A DNA stretch of 64,000 nucleotides from IMG/VR virus record IMGVR_UViG_3300042261_002385, positions 124,001 through 188,000 of that record; one strand, written 5' to 3'. Below the pieces are notes generated by a model that was given only the letters and a program-made list of their open reading frames with translations, was not told the origin of the DNA and ran no database searches. The first letter of the stretch is position 1. Every line of letters begins with the position of its first letter. Of the stretch, positions 2,766 to 56,285 are shown one piece after another. Made by a program: the position numbers and the translations under genes.

Positions 2766-4112
2766 ATGAGTAAATTAATTAAACTAAACACAAGTGAGGA
2801 TAAAGCCCTTTTAAACGATATCTTAAATGATGAGTTAATAGTAATTGAAGACATACAGGGTTCTAAAATCTGGATTAAATGGGATGGTCAAAATTTTGAA
2901 ATAAGACCAAAGTCAATAACGAATGAACCAATCAATTTAATCGATTTAGCAATGCAGAATTACTATAATCCTGTCACTAAATTCTTCTCAGAATTAGATG
3001 ATAGAGTTAAAAGTTTACTTAATCGTAAGTGGTGGTTTTGTTTTGAGTATTTTCCTGATGAACAACCGGCTAATATTGAATATTCTAGAGTTCCAAAGAA
3101 TCATTTAGTATTGAGTTCTATAAATAAAGGTGGTAAATTTGAATTTAATATTGAAGAACTTGATGAATACGCAAGATTATTTGATGTAGATTTGATTCCA
3201 GTTATTTATCAAGGTCAATTGACCGAGACTATGAAAGAAGCAATTATCTACTTTCTAAACACATCTGAAGAAGATTTAGAGTATGTTTTTGGTGATAAAT
3301 CATTTTCTTACTTTTTTTACAAAATATTGAATCCAATTTCTGAAAACTCATTTTTGATGGAAGAAGATTTTCAACAGAATTTAGAAAAATTAATAATTCG
3401 AAGTTCAAAAAGAGATATATCTTTCGAGTTACTGAATCCACTATACAAAAGAATGAATGACTCAAACACAACTGAGTTTGTTGAAATCTACACACTAATA
3501 CTAATTAATTTCTTAAATTTCTGTCAATCAGTGCAATTAGAAAGTGTGAAATTAAAAGGTGATACAAAAGAAGAGATGTATATTTACTTAATTTGCAAAT
3601 TATTCAATATTTATGTATCAGAAGTAAAAGAAGACCTACTTAATTTTGATTTTGTTGTTCCGGAATTTTTTGATAAAGAAAAATTTAAAATAAACACTGA
3701 GTTAATTAAAAATAAATTGACTAAAGATTATCTTAAAGAAGATGATAAACTTGAATACATCTTCAAAGTAATTTTAGGCTCATTTAACAAGAAAAGAAAA
3801 AAACCAATTGGTATCTTTACAGAAAATACCGTAAAACTATTTAATAAATTTGTTGATGATATTGAAGTCTATTTAGGTCGATATCTAAATAAAATTCAAG
3901 AAATTGAACTTGGAAGAGCTGGATTGTTAGACTTTGGTGATTTCTTTGACATTCAGTATGATACAGATGCAGAAGGTCAGGTTTATCCAGATGTTTATGA
4001 TGAGTTTGAAAAAGAAGAAGAAACTGGTAAAAAGAAAAAAGGTAAAGGTGGTAAATTTCCAGTAGGAGCTCCAACTAAAGAGGCACCATCTAAAGAAACA
4101 CCTACTAAGTAA
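2766..4112 (+). CDS. RNA ligase 2-like nucleotidyltransferase-fold protein, probably catalytically degenerate
   Basis: IEDIQGSKI (motif I position, Lys absent), FCFEYF, HLVLSSI, ARLFDVDLIPVIYQG, LEKLIIRS follow Rnl2-type motif order; acidic/basic C-tail. Confidence 0.5.
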   Translation: MSKLIKLNTSEDKALLNDILNDELIVIEDIQGSKIWIKWDGQNFEIRPKSITNEPINLIDLAMQNYYNPVTKFFSELDDRVKSLLNRKWWFCFEYFPDEQPANIEYSRVPKNHLVLSSINKGGKFEFNIEELDEYARLFDVDLIPVIYQGQLTETMKEAIIYFLNTSEEDLEYVFGDKSFSYFFYKILNPISENSFLMEEDFQQNLEKLIIRSSKRDISFELLNPLYKRMNDSNTTEFVEIYTLILINFLNFCQSVQLESVKLKGDTKEEMYIYLICKLFNIYVSEVKEDLLNFDFVVPEFFDKEKFKINTELIKNKLTKDYLKEDDKLEYIFKVILGSFNKKRKKPIGIFTENTVKLFNKFVDDIEVYLGRYLNKIQEIELGRAGLLDFGDFFDIQYDTDAEGQVYPDVYDEFEKEEETGKKKKGKGGKFPVGAPTKEAPSKETPTK

Positions 4113-4312
4113 TGAACTCAATAAATCTAAATATGACTTCACTAGAAGTTAAAGCAGAGTTAAGACCCTTAAAGTGCGAATGGACACGTGAAATGGCTAA
4201 AGATTTACAACATCATAGAGATGTGGATATGAGTTCCTTTGAACTGTTTATTGCAAAACAAATAAGAGCTAATAATCGCAAAAATTCAATCAAAAATATA
4301 TTTCTTAATTAA
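4112..4312 (+). CDS. Small protein containing a gp23-type major capsid protein segment
   Basis: VKAELRPLKCEWTREMAKDLQHHRDVD resembles gp23-family AKSRQLKAxWxxELAQDLxAxHGxD; ends NRKNSIKNIF. Confidence 0.6.
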   Translation: MNSINLNMTSLEVKAELRPLKCEWTREMAKDLQHHRDVDMSSFELFIAKQIRANNRKNSIKNIFLN

Positions 4313-4344: not shown

Positions 4345-5574
4345 ATGAGAATCTCAAACGAATTAGAGTCAGTATACCGTTCCACAATCACTCAAAAGTT
4401 AGACAAAAAAACTAAATCTCTACAATTTTTACCAAAAAGTTTAGAAGAAATCAGTAAGAAAAAACATTTCTATTTTTCGGAAAAAAAACTGAAAACAGCT
4501 TATATTATTGACATCGTTCATAATATGATACTTAAGTACTACTTCAAAAAAGAAAACAAATTTACGATTAATGCGACTGTTTTAAAACAGAAATATGGAC
4601 ACGAGTATAAAGCTTATGTTGATTTTTTGATTTATAAACAAATTATAAAAATGAAATGTAACTATAAAGCAGGTGTTACTTCTAGAATTTATGAATTAAA
4701 TCCAATAACTTTTAAACAACCAATAAGTCGAGTAAAAAATGACGATAAGGTTCTTTTAAAAAAATATAAGAAAAAAATATACGACACAATAGATTTTGTT
4801 AAAAAAGATGACTCTTCAATTCAACCAGAAATTAGAGAAAAATTAATTTCAGACCTTTTTAGTGTTGATATTGACTTTCAAAGAAGTATATTCTTTTTGA
4901 ATTGCTTGAAAAAAGAAGATATTGACATATATAATAGAAATATCTATTCGGTAGAGTCTATTAACGACAAGCACATATTTTATCACTTCGATAACTATGG
5001 TAGATTACATACAAATTTTACAATACTAAAATCATTCATTAGAAAAAACTGTTTACTAATTGATGGAGAAGAAACTTGTGAGATTGATATCAATAATTCA
5101 CAGCCTCTTTTTTTGTGCAAGTTGATACAAGAAAGTGAAACTAATTGGGTGAATAAAGATGAATTTGATTTCTTTAGAAATTTAGTAATGAATGGTAACT
5201 TTTACCAGTATTTAATTCAAATTACCGGTGAAAAAGATAGAAATAAAGTCAAAGAAATGACCTATAAAGTTCTTTTTGGTCACAATAGAATAAACTCAAA
5301 ATCTGATAAAATATTTTCACAGTTATTTCCAACAATACATCATTTTATTAAGCTTTATAAAAAAGAATGGGGTAATCATAAAATAGTAGCTCATGACCTA
5401 CAAAGAGCAGAGTCAAATTTAGTCTATAACAAAATTATTAAAAAGATAATGTTACTACATCCAGAAATAAAGATTATCACAGTTCATGACTCAATAATAT
5501 TTGCAAAAAAATATAGACAAATTGTCCAATCTATTTTTGACTATGAATTATCAAATGAATTTAATTTAAAGTAA
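4345..5574 (+). CDS. Minimal family-A/T7-type polymerase-like protein with N-terminal winged-helix-like region
   Basis: HFDNYGRLHT, EIDINNSQPLFL (motif A), RNKVKEMTYKVLFG (motif B), TVHDSII (motif C); 409 aa, no exonuclease motifs seen. Confidence 0.6.
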   Translation: MRISNELESVYRSTITQKLDKKTKSLQFLPKSLEEISKKKHFYFSEKKLKTAYIIDIVHNMILKYYFKKENKFTINATVLKQKYGHEYKAYVDFLIYKQIIKMKCNYKAGVTSRIYELNPITFKQPISRVKNDDKVLLKKYKKKIYDTIDFVKKDDSSIQPEIREKLISDLFSVDIDFQRSIFFLNCLKKEDIDIYNRNIYSVESINDKHIFYHFDNYGRLHTNFTILKSFIRKNCLLIDGEETCEIDINNSQPLFLCKLIQESETNWVNKDEFDFFRNLVMNGNFYQYLIQITGEKDRNKVKEMTYKVLFGHNRINSKSDKIFSQLFPTIHHFIKLYKKEWGNHKIVAHDLQRAESNLVYNKIIKKIMLLHPEIKIITVHDSIIFAKKYRQIVQSIFDYELSNEFNLK

Positions 5575-14101: not shown

Positions 14102-16831
14102 TCAACTAAATGGATTTATCTGACCTAATACTTGACTCCAAGTAGCAGAAGTTCTTAAAAATGTGAATCCAACTACATCAACTTTATTAGCAGAGGCAGA
14201 ATAAGTTCCACCAGCCCATTTAACACTCTGTGTGACTCCCTCAATATGAACAATTGTTGGTGAGTAAGCTGTAGCTCCTTGGCTAATAATAATAGTAGCT
14301 GTGACCGCTCTGTTATTAGTTGTTGGAACATTGACAAATTTAGCTGTGTAATTAGTTGAAGCCGTTCCGTGATACCAAATCGAACCTAAAGTGAAATCAT
14401 AAACAACATTAGATGCTGTAGCACCTGTTGGTTCTGAGCCGATAACTTCTATGACTTCAGCCAACTCAGATAAACCTGTAGATGAGAATGTGGCAGTAAG
14501 AGTCAAACTGTCACCTACTGATGTTCCACTTGTTCCAGCAGTACCAGAAGTGCCATTTGTTCCAGAAGTACCATTAATTCCAGAACTACCACTTGTGCCA
14601 GAAGTTCCTGCCTCACCACTTGTTCCAGAGGTTCCGGTCGTTCCGGATTCACCACTAGTGCCAGAAGTTCCAGTAGTGCCAGAAGTTCCAGACTCACCAG
14701 TAGTCCCAGAGGTTCCCGATTCACCGCTTGTGCCAGAAGTTCCAGTGGTTCCAGATTCTCCACTTGTTCCAGACGTTCCAGTAGTTCCTGCCTCACCACT
14801 TGTGCCAGAAGTTCCTGCCTCACCACTTGTGCCAGAAGTTCCTGCCTCACCACTTGTGCCAGAGGTTCCTGTATCACCACTTGTTCCGGACGTTCCAGAT
14901 TCCCCGCTTGTTCCAGACGTTCCAGTAGTTCCAGATGTTCCTGCCTCACCACTTGTGCCAGAGGTTCCCGTATCACCACTTGTTCCGGACGTTCCAGATT
15001 CCCCGCTTGTTCCAGACGTTCCAGTAGTTCCAGTAGTTCCAGATGTTCCTGCCTCACCACTTGTTCCAGAAGTTCCATTATCACCGGAAGTTCCGGATGT
15101 TCCTGTATCACCACTTGTTCCGGATGTTCCTGTATCACCACTTGTGCCAGAGGTTCCAAGACCACTACTTCCAGAGGTTCCATTTAAACCACTAGAACCA
15201 GAGGTTCCAGTAGAACCATCTATTCCATTGACACCACTTAGTCCGCTTGTTCCGCTTGAACCAGAGGTTCCTCGAGTACCGGAAGTTCCGGAAGTTCCAA
15301 CCGTTCCAGATACACCACTAGAACCAGAGGTTCCTCGAGTTCCAGAAGTTCCGGAAGTTCCTAAACCAGAAGTACCACTAGAACCAGCAGATCCGGATGT
15401 TCCAGACGTGCCACTAGCACCTGACGAACCAGAAGAGCCACTGCTACCCGAAGTTCCGGAGGTTCCGGAAGTTCCTTTAGTTCCGCTAGTTCCAGATGTG
15501 CCATTATCACCTGAACTACCAGATGTTCCGTTGATACCTGAGCTACCGGATGTTCCGGAAGAACCATTAAGACCAGCGGGTCCTTGAATGGCTCCCATAT
15601 CAACCCAACCATCAGCATTTGAGGCGGCTGACGTTGGATCATATATGTATAGATGACTAGTATCTTGTAAGATATATGTATCTAAAAGATTTGGTTGTGG
15701 TATAGAATAGGATGTTCCTCTACTTTGAGTTAGTGATGAGTATGATGCTTCTACACCCTGTGGACTTAAAGTCTGACCAGGTATACCCTGTGCACCAGAT
15801 GTTCCAGAAGTGGCGGAAGTTCCACTTGTTCCAGATGAACCTCCACCAGAAGTTCCAGATGAACCGCTAGTTCCAGATGAACCGCTAGTTCCAGTTTCAC
15901 CACTAGAACCTGATGACCCACTAGATCCAGATGACCCACTAGACCCAGATGAACCCGAACTGCCGGATTCACCACTTGTGCCGTTTTGACCAGAAGTTCC
16001 GCTTGAACCCGAAGAACCAGTTTCGCCAGAAGTTCCAGATTCACCAGAACTTCCACTTGAGCCAGAAGAACCGGAAGTTCCGTATTCTCCTGAAGTTCCC
16101 GATGTTCCATCAACACCTGATGAGCCAGCATCACCTTCTGCGCCACTTATACCAGAAGTTCCGGAAGTTCCGGTCACTCCGGAGCTTCCTGAGCTACCAC
16201 TTGTTCCAGTTGTTCCACTTTGACCAGAACTTCCAGAAGTGCCATTTGTGCCGTTTACACCTGATGAACCACTTGTTCCAGTTTCACCGGAACTACCACT
16301 TGTTCCAGTTGTTCCACTTTGACCAGAACTTCCAGAAGTGCCACTAGATCCTGACGATCCACTAGACCCTGAAGAACCCGAAGCACCGGACACACCTGAA
16401 GTTCCTGACGTTCCACTTGTGGTGCTAGAACTACCACCAGCAAAAGCTGTACCGTTAATTATCAAAGATGATGTATCAGAAGATAAAATAAATGGTTGAG
16501 ATTCACTACCAAGATTGATGCTATTCATCATAACAGAATTTCCATCTGTTGATATAGTGACACCACCTATATAGATTGTATTACCAGAAACATGAAGACT
16601 CTTCCATCTCAAACTAGATGTTCCCAAATCATATTGAGAGTCAACATCCGGTAAAACATGACCTGAGACGACTGTATTACTTGAAAGTATGCTAAATGTT
16701 GGAGAAGTCACTTCGGTAAACTGAAATGGAACTCCAGCTACCCAACCTCTTCCATTCCATTTGTATCTTACACCTTGAGCATTTACATAAACGTCTCCAA
16801 CATTCGGGTTATTTGGCCAATTTGTATTCAC
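14102..16831 (-). CDS. Collagen-like (Gly-Thr/Ser-Ser) fibre protein
   Basis: N-term WPNNPNVGDVY..YKWNGRGW and HVLPDVDSQYDLGTSSLRWKSLHV fibre-type domains; two long G-X-Y tracts (GTS/GSS/GES); C-terminal beta domain (YDFTLGSIWYH...VKWAGG). Confidence 0.75.
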   Translation of the reverse strand: MNTNWPNNPNVGDVYVNAQGVRYKWNGRGWVAGVPFQFTEVTSPTFSILSSNTVVSGHVLPDVDSQYDLGTSSLRWKSLHVSGNTIYIGGVTISTDGNSVMMNSINLGSESQPFILSSDTSSLIINGTAFAGGSSSTTSGTSGTSGVSGASGSSGSSGSSGSSGTSGSSGQSGTTGTSGSSGETGTSGSSGVNGTNGTSGSSGQSGTTGTSGSSGSSGVTGTSGTSGISGAEGDAGSSGVDGTSGTSGEYGTSGSSGSSGSSGESGTSGETGSSGSSGTSGQNGTSGESGSSGSSGSSGSSGSSGSSGSSGETGTSGSSGTSGSSGTSGGGSSGTSGTSATSGTSGAQGIPGQTLSPQGVEASYSSLTQSRGTSYSIPQPNLLDTYILQDTSHLYIYDPTSAASNADGWVDMGAIQGPAGLNGSSGTSGSSGINGTSGSSGDNGTSGTSGTKGTSGTSGTSGSSGSSGSSGASGTSGTSGSAGSSGTSGLGTSGTSGTRGTSGSSGVSGTVGTSGTSGTRGTSGSSGTSGLSGVNGIDGSTGTSGSSGLNGTSGSSGLGTSGTSGDTGTSGTSGDTGTSGTSGDNGTSGTSGEAGTSGTTGTTGTSGTSGESGTSGTSGDTGTSGTSGEAGTSGTTGTSGTSGESGTSGTSGDTGTSGTSGEAGTSGTSGEAGTSGTSGEAGTTGTSGTSGESGTTGTSGTSGESGTSGTTGESGTSGTTGTSGTSGESGTTGTSGTSGEAGTSGTSGSSGINGTSGTNGTSGTAGTSGTSVGDSLTLTATFSSTGLSELAEVIEVIGSEPTGATASNVVYDFTLGSIWYHGTASTNYTAKFVNVPTTNNRAVTATIIISQGATAYSPTIVHIEGVTQSVKWAGGTYSASANKVDVVGFTFLRTSATWSQVLGQINPFS
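14510..16440 (-). repeat. Gly-X-Y (GTS/GSS) coding repeat tracts, ~14510-15585 and ~15775-16440
   Basis: 9-nt periodic, GC-richer sequence (e.g. ccacttgtgccagaagtt units) standing out from the AT-rich background; boundaries approximate. Confidence 0.85.
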
Positions 16832-16847
16832 TATTCATTTCTTATTT

Positions 16848-18479
16848 TTATATTACTCCATATACTCTTAAGCTATCTACTGTCCAAGTTCCACCAGAAG
16901 AACTTGTAGTTGTTATTGTTATAGTGGCTCCAGCAGCTATAGCCTCTGAATACTTTAAATTTCTACCAACATCATGTTGGTCAGATGTTCCAGTAGCATC
17001 GAGTCTAACTATTTTACTTCTTTTATTAACACCACCAACGACTATATTGAATGTTACTGTGGCATTAGTATTAGCATTAGTAAACAGACCACACTCTGAT
17101 TCAATTATAATTTTTGAATATGCATTTGCAGCTAAAGTATAGCTAAAAGCTGTAGTGTTTGTGCTACCACTCACCGGAGTTTCGTTTGCACTTAATAACA
17201 TAACTGTGCCAGAAGCTGGACTTAAACCTGAAGTTCCGGATGTTCCGGTGGTTCCTTGAGCACCTGAGGATCCACTTGTTCCTGATGTTCCTCTTGTTCC
17301 TCTTGTTCCTGATGTGCCATTCACACCACTGCTACCGGATGTTCCTGAGGTGCCACTGGAACCTAAGAAGTTCCCATCTACCCCAGAGGTTCCACTAGTA
17401 CCTATAGTTCCAGAAGTTCCACTGGTTCCTCTAGTTCCAGAAGTTCCCATAGTTCCTCTTGTTCCAGATGTGCCGTTTACACCAGAAGAGCCAGATGTTC
17501 CTCTTGTTCCACTTGTTCCTGATGTTCCGGTGCTTCCGGAAGTTCCAGAAGTGCCATTAACACCAGAAGTTCCACTGGTTCCTCTTGTTCCTGATGATCC
17601 ACTTGTTCCAGAGGTTCCTCTAGTTCCAGAGGTTCCGTTAACTCCGCTAGTTCCTGATGTTCCATTAATACCACTAGTTCCTGAGGTCCCTGATGTTCCA
17701 TCACCACCAGCAGCTCCATCAAGATTGACAACCCAATTTGAGTACGAAGATGAACCATATTTAGCCAATACTTCATATACTAACTCACCAGTAGAAGAAT
17801 TATAGCTTTCTACCTGACCTTCTATATAATTTGATGCATCATAAGATATTATTATTAATTGAGCGGCACTATATGATAAAGAAGGATCTACAGTAATACT
17901 ATATGTTGATGAAACAGCTGTAGTTGATAAATCAATAGCTGAGTTATATTCTACTCTAAATGAATCACCATCATAACCTGATGTTCCTGAAGTTCCAGCT
18001 GGACCTGTTCCACCAATAGGTCCAATTTCACCTACTGCAGTAACCCATTGATAATAGTCACCGTCATAAATATAGGTGTATAAGTTACCATATTCAGCAT
18101 CATACCAAAAAGAACCTGTTTTAATTTGACTTGTTCCAGTGCCTGTGGGTGTAGTTGATTGATAAAAGAATTTAGCAGATACAGCTGTTATGTAATTTTT
18201 AATTTCGTTGTTTATAAAAATTGGTGAGTTTTGTTGTAAAGTGTCTATCAGTTGTTTGATTCTTGGTAGTCCGAGTTTAGCTTCGTTATTAGAAGAAAAC
18301 GGAATATTTATCAATCTTTGACTTTTAAGACTGATAACAACCATATTGTTTTTTACATAAAGATTTATTACTGTAAATGGATTGACGGTGTATGTGACTA
18401 CTCCAGTATTATCCATTATTTGAATATTCGTATCGTTTGTTCCTAAAGGTCTTAAAAATTTATCCCAACTATAACTCAT
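16848..18479 (-). CDS. Second collagen-like (GTS/GTR) virion protein
   Basis: G-X-Y tract ~17215-17710 (GTSGTRGTSG...), GSFWYDAEYGNLYTYIYDG fibre-type domain. Confidence 0.7.
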   Translation of the reverse strand: MSYSWDKFLRPLGTNDTNIQIMDNTGVVTYTVNPFTVINLYVKNNMVVISLKSQRLINIPFSSNNEAKLGLPRIKQLIDTLQQNSPIFINNEIKNYITAVSAKFFYQSTTPTGTGTSQIKTGSFWYDAEYGNLYTYIYDGDYYQWVTAVGEIGPIGGTGPAGTSGTSGYDGDSFRVEYNSAIDLSTTAVSSTYSITVDPSLSYSAAQLIIISYDASNYIEGQVESYNSSTGELVYEVLAKYGSSSYSNWVVNLDGAAGGDGTSGTSGTSGINGTSGTSGVNGTSGTRGTSGTSGSSGTRGTSGTSGVNGTSGTSGSTGTSGTSGTRGTSGSSGVNGTSGTRGTMGTSGTRGTSGTSGTIGTSGTSGVDGNFLGSSGTSGTSGSSGVNGTSGTRGTRGTSGTSGSSGAQGTTGTSGTSGLSPASGTVMLLSANETPVSGSTNTTAFSYTLAANAYSKIIIESECGLFTNANTNATVTFNIVVGGVNKRSKIVRLDATGTSDQHDVGRNLKYSEAIAAGATITITTTSSSGGTWTVDSLRVYGVI

Positions 18480-30754: not shown

Positions 30755-30967
30755 ATGCAGTTTATTGTAGAATTTAAGTCTTTTTATAAAGTAGGTGATG
30801 TAGTCAAAATTGAATACTGGTGGGATGATATGATCACACCTGTAAAAGTTATTGAACAAACATCACCAAGAACAATCAAAGTTACTCATAATATTCCAGA
30901 ATCTAAAATTCAAAATGCTCCTGATGAAATCATTAGCACTTCAGATATTATAGATATTGCTAGATAA
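30755..30967 (+). CDS. Small SH3-like hypothetical protein
   Basis: YKVGDVVKIEYW; TTTAATATATA at 30738-30748; N-term MQFIVEFKSF. Confidence 0.55.
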   Translation: MQFIVEFKSFYKVGDVVKIEYWWDDMITPVKVIEQTSPRTIKVTHNIPESKIQNAPDEIISTSDIIDIAR

Positions 30968-32159
30968 TCTCACCTTTTCCATCTTCATACATTTTATCTA
31001 AAAGATAATCATAGAAGAATTTATCATATTCAAGATTCATATCTAAATATTGTTCTTTAATTATTTGTAACTCCCAATATTCTAAATTAGAATCGGTGAA
31101 CTTACTCATAATCCAATCATACTTAGGATCTTTATTCGAAACCGAATCAATGTTTATAATATTAGAAATTGGCTTGATGTCATAAAAATCATCATATTGG
31201 TCATAAGCATATGACATATCCATTAAACCGGAACCACTGTCGTAATATTTTTTACCACTTCTTCGATTTCTCTTCTTCTTTTTACCTCTGTTTGAGTAAA
31301 TTTCAGACATACTATCACCATATCCGACACTATCATCATATTGACCATAGTCATATGTTTCATATCCATAATCTTTACGACCGTAGGTAGGGTAAGAATA
31401 ATCTTTCCATTCGTGAACCTCAGGATTACGTTTTGTAGGAAGACTTTCCCAATTAACTTTTACACAAGCTTCAGCCAAATCTGTTAAGTGAAGAATATCT
31501 TGAGACTCATTAGTAGTATGTTCTTTGTAATAACCAACAGAAACATTAGTACACTCTGGAATTAAGTGAGTAAACTCAGCAGAGTCGGTATAAACACCAC
31601 CTGTATCTTTTTTATAAGACAAACTACGAGTCTGATTTAATTCTTGACACAGTGCGTCAGCGAAATCATCAGAACAACAACGAGAAGAAGATTGATAAGT
31701 AATAATAGAAGATACATCACGTCGGTCAAAAGAAATGATGCGGTCATAATTTCCTTTGAAGAATCCGAATTTAGCGGCATTTCCCGAACCAATACATCCA
31801 ACTTCCTCACCAATGAAGAAATAGTAAAGACCTGGAACTTCATTTTTAATCATCCAAAGAAGAACTGTGATACCAGCTTTGTCGTCAGCTCCTAAAGTAG
31901 TTTTACCATCAGTTTTGATTAAATTCTGGTCAAAAACGTGAGTTACTGTGACATAGTCTTTTGATACCGTATCTAGGTGAGCTGCGAAAATTGAACGACT
32001 TTCACCAATTTTATAAAAGTAGTTTCCCCACTCGTCTTTTTGCATACCTTTTGGAAACAACTCTCTCATTGATGCTACGAGTTGGTCCTCGTGTCCATAA
32101 GGAACTGTTTTAGAGGTTAATCTTAAAAATGTTTCAAATACAAATTCTTCTACTTTCAT
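30960..32159 (-). CDS. M20/M28/M42-clan zinc peptidase
   Basis: AHLDTV, LGADDKAG, GEEVGCIGS, ISFDR, YTDSAEF, NVSVGYYKEHT; Tyr/Asp/Gly-rich C-terminal half. Confidence 0.8.
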   Translation of the reverse strand: MKVEEFVFETFLRLTSKTVPYGHEDQLVASMRELFPKGMQKDEWGNYFYKIGESRSIFAAHLDTVSKDYVTVTHVFDQNLIKTDGKTTLGADDKAGITVLLWMIKNEVPGLYYFFIGEEVGCIGSGNAAKFGFFKGNYDRIISFDRRDVSSIITYQSSSRCCSDDFADALCQELNQTRSLSYKKDTGGVYTDSAEFTHLIPECTNVSVGYYKEHTTNESQDILHLTDLAEACVKVNWESLPTKRNPEVHEWKDYSYPTYGRKDYGYETYDYGQYDDSVGYGDSMSEIYSNRGKKKKRNRRSGKKYYDSGSGLMDMSYAYDQYDDFYDIKPISNIINIDSVSNKDPKYDWIMSKFTDSNLEYWELQIIKEQYLDMNLEYDKFFYDYLLDKMYEDGKGEII

Positions 32160-44752: not shown

Positions 44753-45973
44753 ATGGCTAAAAAACAAGAATCGGGCAAAAAATTTGAATTCTCTAAGATT
44801 GGAAATATTATGAACAACATTGCTAAAAATGTTCCAATTATTATTGATGACAAAATCAAAGAAAAAAGTTTTATCTCTACAGGAGTTTATTTATTAGATG
44901 CTGCATTATCAGCTAAATTACTCGGAGGTGGAATTCAATCAAACAGAATCACTGTATTCGCAGGTGAGTCTGGAACAGGTAAATCATTCTTAGCATACTC
45001 AGTTGCTAAACACGCACAAAAAGCAGGATATGGTATCGTCTATATCGACACAGAATATTCAGTAGAATTAGGAGAAATTAATAAATTTGGAATTGACGCA
45101 TCACCTGAAAAATTCATTTTAGTTCGTTCAAATAAAGTAGAAGATATCAATATTACATTGAGTCAATTATTAGACGAATTGAAAGAAGCTAAATTATCAG
45201 GTCAAGAAGTTCAACCACTTATGATTGTATTAGATTCAATTGGACAGATGGCTTCTAATAAAGAAAAGGCTGACTTACTTAAAGGAGATATTAAACAGGA
45301 TATGACTAAAGCTAAAGCAATTGGTTCACTATTCCGTTCAATTAATACAGACTTAGGATTCTTAGAAATTCCTATGGTGGTTTGTAACCATACTTACTTG
45401 ACTCAGGATTTATTTCCACAAGAAGTACTAAAAGGTGGTCGTTCATTAGTTTACTCAGCATCTGTAATTGGTATGATGTCTAAATCAAAACTTAAGACAG
45501 GAGAGGAAGATGATATGGACTTAGGTCAATCTGGTATTAATGTTCTCTTCAAGACAGCTAAAAATCGTTTAGCGAAACCTAAGAAAATTAGATTTGATAT
45601 CTCTTTTAATCATGGTATGAATCCTTATACAGGACTTGATGCTTTCTGTCGTCCAGAATACTTTGAACAAATTGGAATTGCTCAAGGTAAAATGGACGTA
45701 GACAAGAAGACCGGAGAAATGAATTTCACACCAGGTGGAAACAGATGGTATGTAAGTCACTTAAGTAAGTCGTTTACAACTAAACAATTATTTACACAAG
45801 AAATATTTACAGAAGAGGTTCTTAAAAGAATGGAGCCTATCGTGAATGAATATTTCCGTTACAAATCTTTAGATGAAATTGAAGAGATTGAAAAACAATT
45901 TACAGAAATTGAAGAAGAAGATGATACAAACGGATTTGTAGATTCAGCAGATGCTGATGATATCTTTGGATAA
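44753..45973 (+). CDS. recA: RecA/UvsX recombinase
   Basis: ISTGVYLLDAAL, FAGESGTGKS Walker A, IDTEYS, IVLDSIG, VVCNHTY, GGRSLVYSAS (T4 UvsX-like); TTTAATATATA at 44718-44728. Confidence 0.92.
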   Translation: MAKKQESGKKFEFSKIGNIMNNIAKNVPIIIDDKIKEKSFISTGVYLLDAALSAKLLGGGIQSNRITVFAGESGTGKSFLAYSVAKHAQKAGYGIVYIDTEYSVELGEINKFGIDASPEKFILVRSNKVEDINITLSQLLDELKEAKLSGQEVQPLMIVLDSIGQMASNKEKADLLKGDIKQDMTKAKAIGSLFRSINTDLGFLEIPMVVCNHTYLTQDLFPQEVLKGGRSLVYSASVIGMMSKSKLKTGEEDDMDLGQSGINVLFKTAKNRLAKPKKIRFDISFNHGMNPYTGLDAFCRPEYFEQIGIAQGKMDVDKKTGEMNFTPGGNRWYVSHLSKSFTTKQLFTQEIFTEEVLKRMEPIVNEYFRYKSLDEIEEIEKQFTEIEEEDDTNGFVDSADADDIFG

Positions 45974-53659: not shown

Positions 53660-54031
53660 TTATTTTTCAAAATAAGAATCAATCTTTTCTTTTTCTTCTT
53701 TAGAAACTTCTGTGTAGATTCTCTCAAATCTATCCATCACTTCTTTTGCTGCGGCTAATGGAGCATCTTCTTCAGATGGAATTTCTGTTGGGGTAATTCC
53801 TGGACGAGTTGGTCTTGGAATTGTAGTTGGAGCCGGAGTTGTAGTCGGAGATGGTTTTGTCTCTGTTCCAGCCAACGGAGCATCTTCTTCTGACGGAATT
53901 TCTGTTGGTGTGATTCCTGGACGAGTTGGTCTTGGAATTGTAGTTGGAGCCGGAGTCGTAGTTGGAGATGGTTTTGTTTCCGTCATCACAAACTCTTCGA
54001 CAAATCTCTGATATTTTTTGATATAACCCAT
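53660..54031 (-). CDS. Pro/Thr-rich CTS-like protein with internal duplication
   Basis: Starts MGYIKKYQRFVEE; TTTAATATATA at 54051-54061. Confidence 0.65.
   Translation of the reverse strand: MGYIKKYQRFVEEFVMTETKPSPTTTPAPTTIPRPTRPGITPTEIPSEEDAPLAGTETKPSPTTTPAPTTIPRPTRPGITPTEIPSEEDAPLAAAKEVMDRFERIYTEVSKEEKEKIDSYFEK
53760..53983 (-). repeat. 117-bp-period tandem duplication (TETKPSPTTTPAPTTIPRPTRPGITPTEIPSEEDAPLA x2)
   Basis: Copies begin at 53760 and 53877; peptide identical, about 8 nucleotide differences, all silent. Confidence 0.92.
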
Positions 54032-54139: not shown

Positions 54140-54718
54140 ATGAAAAGATTTTCAGAATTACAAAAGAAATCAAAAGTTAGAAGAATTTTCGAAGCAGAAG
54201 AAGGAGCAAATCTTCCATCTAACTACAAAGATATGTCAAAAGAAGAACTTATAAAATTGATGTCAGGTCAAGCTGGTAAAGAAGAAGATAATGAAAAAGA
54301 AGATGAAAAAGAAGACAAACAAGAATCATCAAAAGAAGGTGGTGATGTGGTAAAATTCTTTTCTAAATTATTCGAAAGTAGAGAAATGGCTCACATATAT
54401 CACTTAACGGTAAAAGGTGAGATGGGTTCACACGCAGCTCACTTAGCACTAAATGAATACTATGATGGAATTCTTGGTTTTATTGATGAAATGATTGAAG
54501 TTTATCAAGGTCAATATGGTATAATTGAGGGTTATGAAACAATTGATACTTCGGAGACTCAAAGTAAAGATAAAATTGATTATTTTGAAGAACTTGTTAA
54601 ACAAATCAGAGAAGATAGAAAATCAATCAATAGCGAAGATACTCATATTCATAATATCGTTGATGAAGCAATTGCTTTAATGTATAAAACACTATATAAG
54701 TTAAAATATAACAAATAA
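54140..54718 (+). CDS. DUF5856-type ferritin-like protein with N-terminal extension
   Basis: AHIYHL...SHAAHLALNEYYDGI..FIDEMIEVYQGQYG four-helix pattern; starts MKRFSEL. Confidence 0.68.
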   Translation: MKRFSELQKKSKVRRIFEAEEGANLPSNYKDMSKEELIKLMSGQAGKEEDNEKEDEKEDKQESSKEGGDVVKFFSKLFESREMAHIYHLTVKGEMGSHAAHLALNEYYDGILGFIDEMIEVYQGQYGIIEGYETIDTSETQSKDKIDYFEELVKQIREDRKSINSEDTHIHNIVDEAIALMYKTLYKLKYNK

Positions 54719-54722
54719 AAAT

Positions 54723-54750
54723 AAAACCCACTTACAGAGTGGGTTTTTTT
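54723..54750. terminator. Intrinsic terminator, probably bidirectional
   Basis: aaaacccact-tacag-agtgggtttttt between convergent genes. Confidence 0.8.
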
Positions 54751-55031
54751 ATTTCTATATTTTTGTAATATCTAATTTTTATAATATTTTTAGAGTATCT
54801 ACTCATTATTGATTTATTTAATGAAAATTCATCTTTAACATTTAAACCTAAATCAAATATCTTACTAATCGTTCTTTTTCTATTTACATTTTTAGAACCA
54901 TATTCAACTATTTCTGAGGAAGTAGTCATTGGTATATAAGGTACCCAAACGTATCCAGGTTCTAAATTAGAACTCTTCTTTCCTATTTGAATTTTCTGTT
55001 CACCAGGTATTTGATTTTGGTTAACAAACAT
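54732..55031 (-). CDS. Small protein containing the C-terminal segment of a gp23-type major capsid protein
   Basis: LEPGYVWVPYIPM ... KSIMSRYSKNII..RYY resembles gp23-family GYVYAPYxPL ... KGxMTRYAKxxV...FY; interrupted by NRKRTISKIF. Confidence 0.65.
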   Translation of the reverse strand: MFVNQNQIPGEQKIQIGKKSSNLEPGYVWVPYIPMTTSSEIVEYGSKNVNRKRTISKIFDLGLNVKDEFSLNKSIMSRYSKNIIKIRYYKNIEIKKPTL

Positions 55032-55227
55032 TTTTGTAGATTTTATTTATAGAACTTTTTCTTCTTAAAGGTCTTTCGAAAATACCTAACTTTCTGAGTA
55101 TTTCTAAGTCTATTTCTTTTGCTACTTGCTCAGATAAAATTTTAGTAAGTTCAGATTCTATGTCTCTTGTAGAAGTAGAAACAGTATTATTACTATCAAC
55201 CACACCTTTGACTTTATACTTTTTCAC
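55021..55227 (-). CDS. Small protein containing the spine-helix segment of a gp23-type major capsid protein
   Basis: DIESELTKILSEQVAKEIDLEILRKL resembles gp23-family DAEAELxxILSxxIxxEIxREIL; ends RRKSSINKIY. Confidence 0.65.
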   Translation of the reverse strand: MKKYKVKGVVDSNNTVSTSTRDIESELTKILSEQVAKEIDLEILRKLGIFERPLRRKSSINKIYKNVC

Positions 55228-55250: not shown

Positions 55251-55568
55251 TTATTTGTTTTCAGTATAAAGATACTTTCTACCTTCATCATTATAACTAT
55301 TCATGTTTTGTAGAAAAGTATCTAATTTATCTTGTGTATCGTCTAAATTTTTTTTAATTACTTGAAGAGCAAAAATTGAATCATCTATCTGATCATTACC
55401 TTTTTGAGAATCACTTACATAATTATTTAACTCACTTGTTAAAGACTCAATAGTTTTAGTCTTATCTTTGATAGAATCCGATATTTCAGTAATCTCTTTT
55501 ACAATTTCTTCAATTCTGTCAGGTGATATATCAACCTCTTCAGTCTCATAAAATCTTTTAATTCTCAT
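55251..55568 (-). CDS. Coiled-coil CTS-like protein (start revised to 55568)
   Basis: MRIKRFYETEE; palindromic promoter at 55583-55604. Confidence 0.6.
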   Translation of the reverse strand: MRIKRFYETEEVDISPDRIEEIVKEITEISDSIKDKTKTIESLTSELNNYVSDSQKGNDQIDDSIFALQVIKKNLDDTQDKLDTFLQNMNSYNDEGRKYLYTENK

Positions 55569-55582
55569 AGAAAGTGTTTTAA

Positions 55583-55604
55583 AATTTAATATATATATTA
55601 AATT
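55583..55604. promoter_or_regulatory. Palindromic bidirectional late-type promoter
   Basis: Perfect 22-bp palindrome aatttaatatatatattaaatt between divergent genes. Confidence 0.7.
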
Positions 55605-56285
55605 ATGAAACGTAGAAATAAACATCTAATACTAGAGTTCACCGAATTCAATCTTCAGCGTTTTAATCCTGACTCAGCTAGAGCATCAGTTCATGTTGAC
55701 GATCCTAAATTGAGTATCGATGCATTTGATAAACATCAAGATGCAATTAGAGCAGCGATGTCAAGAATCACTGATATCTTAATGAATGTTAAGGGAACAA
55801 CTGCTTACTCACAACTGAGAAGTAAACTAGCTCTCGAAAAACAAGATATTCAAAATTTAAAAATTCAGAAAATTGTTAAGAACGGTATTAAATATGATTG
55901 TTACGTTGTAGTCACTATTGATGATGAAGATTATTGGGGCGTAGTTGAAGATATTTTAGGTCAAAATACAGAATTTACTTCAGAATTGTTTAAAGATATG
56001 GACCTTTATCAACCAATAGAATGGACTATTAAAATTAAAGGTCTTGTAATCAAAACAATTAAAGAGTGGTTGAAACCAGAACCCGGAAATTATAGATTAT
56101 TAAATAATGAAGTAATTTGCTATTCACAAGAGACAGGAAAACTCTTAAAAATGGAACAGGGAATTGAAATAGAGTTGATAAGAGCCTATGACGAAAAACT
56201 ACTTATTCGTTATGAGTCGAATGTTTATAGTTTAGTAAATGATAATTATATCTATTTTAATTGGTGGTTTGAAAAAATAGATTAA
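55605..56285 (+). CDS. Hypothetical protein (CTS-like variant HLILEFTEF)
   Basis: 226 aa ORF starting immediately after the palindrome. Confidence 0.55.
   Translation: MKRRNKHLILEFTEFNLQRFNPDSARASVHVDDPKLSIDAFDKHQDAIRAAMSRITDILMNVKGTTAYSQLRSKLALEKQDIQNLKIQKIVKNGIKYDCYVVVTIDDEDYWGVVEDILGQNTEFTSELFKDMDLYQPIEWTIKIKGLVIKTIKEWLKPEPGNYRLLNNEVICYSQETGKLLKMEQGIEIELIRAYDEKLLIRYESNVYSLVNDNYIYFNWWFEKID

Follow-up and report, generated by a model that had tools for sequence, protein, structure and literature searches.

Two overlapping small genes in the genome of a huge phage encode short pieces of a T4-type capsid protein joined to a shared basic helix, and they belong to a widespread, conserved and apparently undescribed family of such tagged mini-proteins, whose role can at present only be inferred from sequence. 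The genes were found in a 64,000-nucleotide stretch of DNA (the window; positions 124,001 to 188,000 of IMG/VR record IMGVR_UViG_3300042261_002385). A previous sequence-only reading had described two mini-ORFs that overlap by 11 nt, keep capsid order, derive from different pieces of a gp23-family capsid protein and each carry an RKxxIxKI helix. That observation is confirmed by our analysis. Its interpretation, that these are repurposed capsid fragments acting as immune decoys, as dominant-negative blockers of a competitor's head assembly or as adaptors, is only partly supported: the ORFs are intact, conserved capsid-derived fragments, but nothing we computed shows binding or an effect that would establish one of the three roles.

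Architecture of the mini-ORFs

The window is AT-rich (about 30% G+C). Its closest GenBank relatives are the uncultured phages LR745206 and LR756502 (634 and 642 kb), which belong to the Mahaphage clade, predicted to infect Bacteroidetes (PMC7162821), and a 436-kb IMG/VR contig carries the region at 99% identity. The features are as follows.

55021-55227, minus strand: ORF B, 68 aa, GTG start, TAA stop; a disordered N terminus, a capsid-type spine helix, a short linker, then the tail 4 aa before the stop.
55087-55164, minus strand: B head, residues 22-47 (DIESELTKILSEQVAKEIDLEILRKL), the gp23/gp24-type spine-helix segment.
55036-55065, minus strand: B tail, residues 55-64 (RRKSSINKIY).
54732-55031, minus strand: ORF A, 99 aa, ATG start, TAA stop; capsid C-terminal block 1, an internal tail, then capsid C-terminal block 2.
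54921-54956, minus strand: A block 1, residues 26-37 (GYVWVPYIPMTT), matching the capsid motif G-Y-V-Y-A-P-Y-V-P-L.
54855-54884, minus strand: A internal tail, residues 50-59 (NRKRTISKIF), inside an insertion of about 21-22 aa relative to canonical capsid proteins.
54750-54830, minus strand: A block 2, residues 68-94 (EFSLNKSIMSRYSKNIIKIRYYKNIEI), matching the capsid C-terminal D-F-T-P-R-K-G-V-M-T-R-Y-G-K-K-M-V...F-Y-G-T-V-T-V.
54723-54747: bidirectional terminator hairpin that overlaps the last codons and the stop of ORF A and closes the convergent DUF5856 gene; similar hairpins overlap the ends of related mini-ORFs.
4112-4312, plus strand: ORF C, 66 aa, a third family member; a capsid segment (the stretch just before the spine helix plus its first half) followed by the tail NRKNSIKNIF at 4274-4303. 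Its ATG overlaps the stop of the upstream 448-aa gene, and the gene order is the same in LR745206.
55251-55625, minus strand: conserved acidic coiled-coil gene (124 aa) directly upstream, which marks the start of the mini-ORF array in relatives.
54140-54718, plus strand: convergent DUF5856 gene (Pfam, E 3e-16), which bounds the array on the other side and holds the same position in relatives.

ORF A lies in the +1 frame relative to ORF B. Each ORF holds an R-K-x-K/S-I-x-K/N-I-F/Y motif, here called the tail. One correction to the original description is needed: the first 10 residues of the window's ORF A (MFVNQNQIPG) are the start of a neighbouring mini-ORF ('MFV'), fused on by a deletion, and the ancestral A is 82-90 aa.

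Similarity to gp23-type capsid proteins

The capsid similarity is real. Pfam Gp23 (PF07068) is the top hit for B, whose residues 22-47 match profile positions 169-194 (E 4e-4, 20 bits), for C (profile 132-183, E 5.5e-5) and for the A-type ORF of LR745206 (E 2e-4); each falls below the 24.4-bit cut-off, as expected for fragments. We next used a genuine 544-aa gp23-type capsid protein from another huge phage for a tblastn search of the whole window, which gave only three clearly significant places. These are B (capsid residues 335-360, 61.5% identity over 26 aa), A (capsid residues 479-542, with a 22-aa gap exactly where the NRKRTISKIF stretch sits) and C (E 1.7e-4). A fourth HSP at 3960-4073, in the low-complexity end of the 448-aa ORF upstream of C, shares the linked E-value of C and looks like chance. 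Canonical capsid proteins from IMG/VR contain ELTKILSEQVA, a run of 11 residues identical to B, and end in ...GYVYAPYVPL...EDFTPRKGVMTRYGKKMVRSDFYGTVTV, which is colinear with blocks 1 and 2 of A.

A profile of the A family hits full-length capsid proteins, at block 2, with E about 1e-7 in a library of 1.84 billion proteins, and a profile of the B family has T4 gp24 (residues 164-214) as its best three PDB matches, although weakly (E 0.18). For A alone, PHROGs and Pfam gave no hits, tblastn against GenBank phages found nothing, and the A profile found nothing in the PDB. No parent capsid gene was found in the window.

The ORFs cover only 26-65 capsid residues each and, at 66-99 aa, cannot form a complete HK97 fold. 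AlphaFold predicts B as one long helix (residues 18-46, pLDDT 85-95) plus a short helix over the tail (57-67), and gives A no confident fold on its own, with only the tail helical.

Conservation and selection

The sequence-only reading would have been refuted had the ORFs lacked a gp23 profile match or been non-conserved, neutrally evolving debris, and neither is the case. In metagenomes, B has at least 80 homologue clusters at 90% identity, of 59-93 aa (nearly all 62-76 aa), conserved along the whole length including the tail, with 12 invariant alignment columns. A has at least 232 clusters, typically of 82-90 aa, in which the internal tail is conserved, and C has 17. The homologues are unnamed or labelled 'hypothetical', apart from a few with an evidently spurious JGI label.

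Pooled Nei-Gojobori estimates on DNA retrieved from metagenomes gave a dN/dS for A of 0.40 overall, 0.18 on block 1 (GYVYAPYIPMTT), 0.18 on the tail and 0.43 on block 2. The values for B were 0.34 overall, 0.32 on the helix, 0.96 on the linker and 0.12 on the tail, although dS may be depressed by the AT-rich codon bias. The tail is therefore the most constrained part (0.12 in B; 0.18 in A, where block 1 has the same value), while its synonymous sites vary freely (pS 0.65 in the B tail, nearly saturated). Arg codons vary among CGC, CGT, AGG and AGA, Ile codons vary as well, and the DNA after the motif is unrelated between copies; hence the constraint acts on the protein and not on the DNA. Start codons and terminators are kept.

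These results led us to reject several other readings of the tail and the split genes. A DNA element (promoter, leader, intron end, mobile in-frame repeat or other regulatory motif) is ruled out by the synonymous variation and the unrelated flanks. Exons of an intron-split gene, or a recoded, read-through capsid gene, are not supported, because no conserved sequence follows the pieces, the stops are a mix of TAA, TAG and TGA, and the window has long ORFs under the standard code. The tail is not a copy of the conserved N-terminal motif KQKAMKKW of the resident capsid protein, which scores -3.7 in a tail scoring matrix against 20 or more for true tails. A membrane-targeting helix of the MinD/FtsA type, for which a mean hydrophobicity near zero would be expected, may be less likely but is not rejected: the tails are amphipathic (hydrophobic moment 0.2-0.45) but much more hydrophilic (mean hydrophobicity -0.3 to -0.76) than two approximate MinD anchor sequences. 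PIP-box-like clamp binding and a MuA-type ClpX tag were considered by analogy only.

A larger modular family

The sequence-only reading had treated A and B as a pair. However, B sits next to A in only 8 of 46 related loci, so that an obligate pairing is rejected, and in LR745206 and LR756502 B lies in a different neighbourhood. The two ORFs are members of a larger modular family, which includes the third capsid-derived member in the window. The strict motif R-[RK]-x-[KS]-I-x-[KNR]-I-[FYW] occurs twice in the window against 0.0 in shuffles, and 15 times in the complete genome LR745206 against 0.38 in shuffles, all on small ORFs. Looser scans place the motif near the end of ORFs of 40-90 aa. The tail scoring matrix gives true tails 20-30 bits, while none of 465 larger ORFs (150 aa or more) exceeds 17.6, although weaker tail-like motifs sit at the termini of a few larger proteins.

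The heads in LR745206 are of several kinds. In addition to further capsid segments, one tail-bearing ORF is a clear scaffold-repeat fragment, 51-55% identical to the repeats of the resident protease-scaffold protein (E 1e-17). Short motif matches suggest other origins: a DLVADPGF motif like the resident protease, the motif DFASLYPSTQR like the resident family-B polymerase, and a tail-fibre-like motif. The polymerase origin was not confirmed by Pfam and rests on a 14-aa match to the resident polymerase. Our evidence for conservation comes from the A, B, C and MFV types and does not extend to most of the other tail-bearing ORFs of this genome.

In relatives, the locus between the coiled-coil gene and the DUF5856 gene holds an array of one to three overlapping mini-ORFs, each in the +1 frame of the one before; the upstream members change from genome to genome, and A is the constant last member. 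Programmed +1 frameshifting between successive ORFs could not be excluded, but each downstream ORF has its own ATG in the overlap, which favours coupled reinitiation. Across the protein library the same modules (blocks 1 and 2, tail T, further segment X) appear in the orders 1-T-2, 1-2-T, 2-1-T (circularly permuted), 1-T-2-T and X-T-1-T-2, both as fused proteins and as split overlapping ORFs, and also fused with further capsid segments in one frame. Some tail-less small hits are only partial capsid genes at contig ends.

Heads compared with canonical and resident capsid proteins

The capsid protein used by this phage clade, here called resident, was not recovered from the window's own contig and was taken from close relatives. 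It was located in LR745206 (locus L010, 4752-6434) and is 69-80% conserved in at least 223 IMG/VR contigs. Its spine helix is near-invariant in 76 relatives (IVQKMESILVNELSQTISKQIVAKIFEMG) and unlike the B helix. The B head of the window scores 35.8 bits (73% identity) to canonical capsid proteins against 18.1 bits (27% identity) to the resident one, the C head 32.7 against 13.9 bits, and the A head 39.7 against 27.3 bits. On what appears, from matching lengths, to be a single 122,303-bp contig carrying both the array and the capsid gene, B scores 36.6 against 21.9 bits, but A only 32.3 against 30.4. Over these tests the B head reaches 35-37 bits (59-73% identity) to canonical proteins and 18-22 bits (27-29%) to the resident one. 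The B and C heads are therefore not tracking the resident capsid protein and keep the canonical gp23/gp24 signature, whereas in the single-contig test the A head is about as similar to one as to the other.

Possible roles

Taken together, A, B and C belong to a conserved family of modular microproteins in a clade of huge Bacteroidota-type phages, in which a head, a short and highly conserved segment copied from a phage protein (here a gp23/gp24-type major capsid protein), is combined with a common basic helix of about 9 aa. The analysis establishes that the genes are real, widespread and under purifying selection, that selection on the peptide is strongest in the tail, that the heads keep residues conserved in real capsid proteins without being able to form a capsid fold by themselves, and that the modules occur in varying order, split or fused. 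Binding, docking and any effect on a capsid are inferred from sequence alone. In this view, the head would be a bait that binds whatever its counterpart binds inside a gp23-type capsid protein, meaning the rest of the fold or capsomer during folding and assembly, and the tail would be a handle that docks all these baits to one shared, hypothetical partner. As the B and C heads match canonical T4-like capsid proteins and not the near-invariant resident one, we tentatively favour trans-dominant interference with capsid formation by co-infecting T4-like phages, while the resident capsid would stay insensitive. This reading would explain the canonical-like heads and their turnover at one conserved locus. 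Huge phages of this clade also reportedly carry other anti-competitor tools, such as CRISPR arrays aimed at other phages. However, the scaffold-like head and the short protease- and polymerase-like motifs resemble resident proteins, which fits self-directed or packaging roles better, and a polymerase motif-A fragment is an unlikely dominant-negative. The A head does not clearly discriminate between the two capsid types, and the spine helix and C-terminal strands lie in the core of the HK97 fold rather than at capsomer interfaces, so that interference would have to act during folding.

The closest competitor, possible but less likely, is that these are prohead-core or internal head proteins, the tail being a capsid- or scaffold-targeting peptide that loads many unrelated small proteins into the prohead, where they would help to size or shape the giant head or be injected with the DNA. 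In T4, a ~10-aa targeting sequence plays this role, and the small core proteins gp67 and gp68 are present in hundreds of copies (PMC9958956, PMC9026906). A short motif shared by otherwise unrelated small proteins in variable arrays, recognisable heads that come mostly from head-morphogenesis proteins (capsid, scaffold repeats, a protease motif), arrays lying among structural-looking genes and after an acidic coiled-coil gene, a basic tail that would suit the very acidic scaffold, and the weaker tail-like motifs at the termini of a few larger proteins all agree with it. Yet the T4 sequence is N-terminal (PMC9958956) and removed by the prohead protease at L/I-x-E (PMC9026906), whereas the present motif is basic, lies 1-11 aa before the stop or is internal, is unrelated in sequence and has no Glu cleavage context; no link to gp67, gp68 or internal proteins appears among the Pfam or PHROG hits (E up to 1 for gp67 and gp68); and packaging does not explain why heads must keep canonical capsid residues or why they differ from the resident capsid. 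An unlikely alternative is that the proteins are decoys or antagonists of host immune sensors, the head occupying the sensor and the tail preventing activation or removing the complex. The heads are the most conserved segments of proteins that bacterial defences sense, as in the capsid-sensing systems Lit/Gol and CapRel, head turnover between close relatives looks like an arms race, and a 169-aa ORF in LR745206 ends in the N-terminal capsid motif LPSG.LFY.D.QYG followed by a basic run. A decoy, however, should mimic the resident capsid that the host actually sees, which the B and C heads do not; no padloc or anti-defence similarity supports this reading, and no sensor is known in these hosts.

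Less likely still, the ORFs could be accessory parts of the phage's own capsid, separately encoded or permuted pieces of a second, gp24-like capsid or vertex gene that assemble together, or with the resident capsid protein, into a small P-domain-like unit. B, MFV and A lie in capsid order at one locus in successive +1 frames and occur fused in one frame in other genomes (library protein P0233), as if derived from one gene; tail-less mini-capsid proteins (P0331 and P0342) join the N-terminal block to the C-terminal blocks in either order; gp24 is the best, albeit weak, PDB hit of the B profile; and all faces of the B helix are conserved, as for a buried helix. Against this, B and C overlap in capsid coordinates, A occurs without B nearby in 38 of 46 loci, AlphaFold sees no fold for A, and non-capsid heads carry the same tail. 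Finally, functionless remains of a decayed second capsid gene, or of gene fragments carrying a selfish in-frame insertion element, might be suggested by the successive +1 shifts, by the deletion fusion in the window's ORF A and by the partial capsid genes among database hits, but this is very unlikely and largely refuted by the narrow typical sizes, the low dN/dS and the variation at synonymous sites.

Relation to known systems

Full-text literature searches found no description of capsid-fragment small proteins or of this motif, in agreement with the sequence-only reading. The heads of A, B and C are colinear with conserved segments of the gp23/gp24 capsid and vertex proteins and keep their signature residues: the stretch before the spine helix, the spine helix, and the C-terminal G-Y-V-Y-A-P-Y-x-P and S/T-R-Y...Y-Y-G blocks. 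They are, however, 60-100 aa instead of 400-630, lack the A-domain, E-loop, N-arm and insertion domain, are not predicted to fold alone, and carry a basic helix that capsid proteins lack. The T4 internal proteins (IPI, IPII, IPIII, Alt) and gp67/gp68 are likewise small, otherwise unrelated proteins, sharing one short terminal peptide and encoded in variable arrays near head genes, but the T4 signal is acidic-hydrophobic and cleaved at Glu, no sequence or profile similarity was found, and the heads described here are fragments of conserved phage proteins. Trans-dominant capsid-derived inhibitors (Fv1 and enJS56A1 in mammals) and plant and animal microProteins such as Id or LITTLE ZIPPER follow the logic proposed here, a fragment or copy of an assembly protein that keeps only an interaction surface and acts on the full-length protein. 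Those are host-encoded or regulate transcription factors, and none is known to be a phage-encoded set of peptide-sized capsid segments with a common tag. Satellite capsid remodellers (P4 Sid, SaPI CpmB/Ccm, PLE TcaP) interfere with another phage's capsid assembly, and Ccm is a capsid-protein homologue, but they are full domains or external scaffolds that redirect capsid size, whereas the present genes sit in a huge phage, are peptide-sized and carry a shared tail. Rickettsia palindromic elements are also short modules inserted in frame in many unrelated ORFs, as the tail is inside a loop of ORF A, but here there is neither DNA-level conservation nor a palindrome.

On a broader and still doubtful reading, huge phages would carry a library of tagged peptide mimics, the most conserved segments of capsid, scaffold, protease, polymerase and fibre proteins, each fused to one common docking helix, and would use it as a protein-level, broad-spectrum weapon or shield. 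It would either poison the folding and assembly of competing T4-like phages, whose capsid proteins match the baits while the resident one does not, or blind host sensors of those segments, and would represent a new class of phage conflict system built from fragments of essential genes. If the mimic-plus-handle reading is right, this would be the first example of a virus of bacteria turning peptide-sized pieces of conserved viral proteins into trans-acting agents. It would reveal a new short linear motif with a dedicated partner in megaphages, and give a simple experimental handle (60-90-aa peptides and tail point mutants) on how giant capsids assemble or how huge phages compete. Even on the most sober reading, the finding defines several large, conserved families of phage small proteins, hundreds of clusters in all, that are currently annotated as hypothetical, and it warns that weak Gp23 domain hits on tiny ORFs in metagenomes are not all partial genes.

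Other genes of the window and of related genomes

Four further features of the window were noted:
14102-16831 and 16848-18479, minus strand: two large collagen-triple-helix repeat proteins
53660-54031, minus strand: a 123-aa ORF with an internal tandem duplication
4345-5574, plus strand: a 409-aa ORF directly after mini-ORF C, the capsid-segment mini-ORF
44753-45973 and 30960-32159: a RecA/UvsX-like recombinase and an M28-type peptidase homologue

The two collagen-repeat proteins (Pfam Collagen, E 3.5e-76 and 1e-23) sit in a stretch of 42-46% G+C, against about 30% elsewhere, and are probably fibre or whisker proteins. The 123-aa ORF contains a perfect tandem duplication of a ~38-aa Pro/Thr-rich unit (TETKPSPTTTPAPTTIPRPTRPGITPTEIPSEEDAPLA), and is conserved next to the mini-ORF array in relatives. 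The 409-aa ORF has no Pfam hit, but carries an ...ITVHDSIIF... motif reminiscent of single-subunit polymerases. The same gene order, in which a 448-aa ORF with an IKWDG ligase-like motif is followed by C and then by this ORF, holds in the related megaphage genome LR745206. The recombinase was recognized at E 1.6e-10. Since the peptidase gene follows the capsid gene directly in LR745206, the head-gene region is rearranged in the window's genome. In LR745206, the family-B DNA polymerase looks split: motif A (DFASLYPT) lies in a 515-codon ORF at about 234.0 kb on the plus strand (locus L010), while motif C (YGDTDS) lies in a 476-codon ORF at about 131.7 kb on the minus strand (locus L008), about 100 kb away.

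Neighbourhoods and possible further tagged proteins

In two relatives, a ~190-aa ORF with a 2OG-Fe(II) oxygenase hit just below the Pfam cut-off (E 3e-5) is inserted at different positions of the mini-ORF array (relative locus L020, 6201-6770, and relative locus L059, 4291-4872); this ORF is absent from the window. In two relatives (locus L075, 5318-6745, and locus L085, 5319-6116), ORF A, the mini-ORF with the capsid C-terminal blocks, stands alone in a different neighbourhood, after a GDTH-motif phosphoesterase-like (possibly Mre11/SbcD-type) gene and close to ORFs with GIY-YIG-like N-termini that may be homing endonucleases. The arrangement hints at how modules move; these family assignments were made by eye only.

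Capsid C-terminal mini-ORFs may also exist outside this phage clade, since a G+C-rich, unrelated metagenome contig (locus L091, 3169-3510) carries a 113-aa ORF made of a canonical capsid C-terminus, without the insertion, followed by a Lys run. In addition, a 169-codon ORF at 291.3-291.8 kb of LR745206 (locus L011) ends with the conserved N-terminal capsid motif LPSGKLFYMDYQYGS followed by a Lys/Arg run, and may be a further, differently tagged capsid-fragment protein. Finally, three larger ORFs of LR745206, at 377.66 kb (+), 252.9 kb (+) and 226.4 kb (+) (169, 359 and 187 aa), carry weaker tail-like motifs at their very N- or C-termini (MGRKSSINKIK..., ...LKKKINRLY..., ...RRDKKINDIF...). The motif may therefore tag some full-size proteins too.
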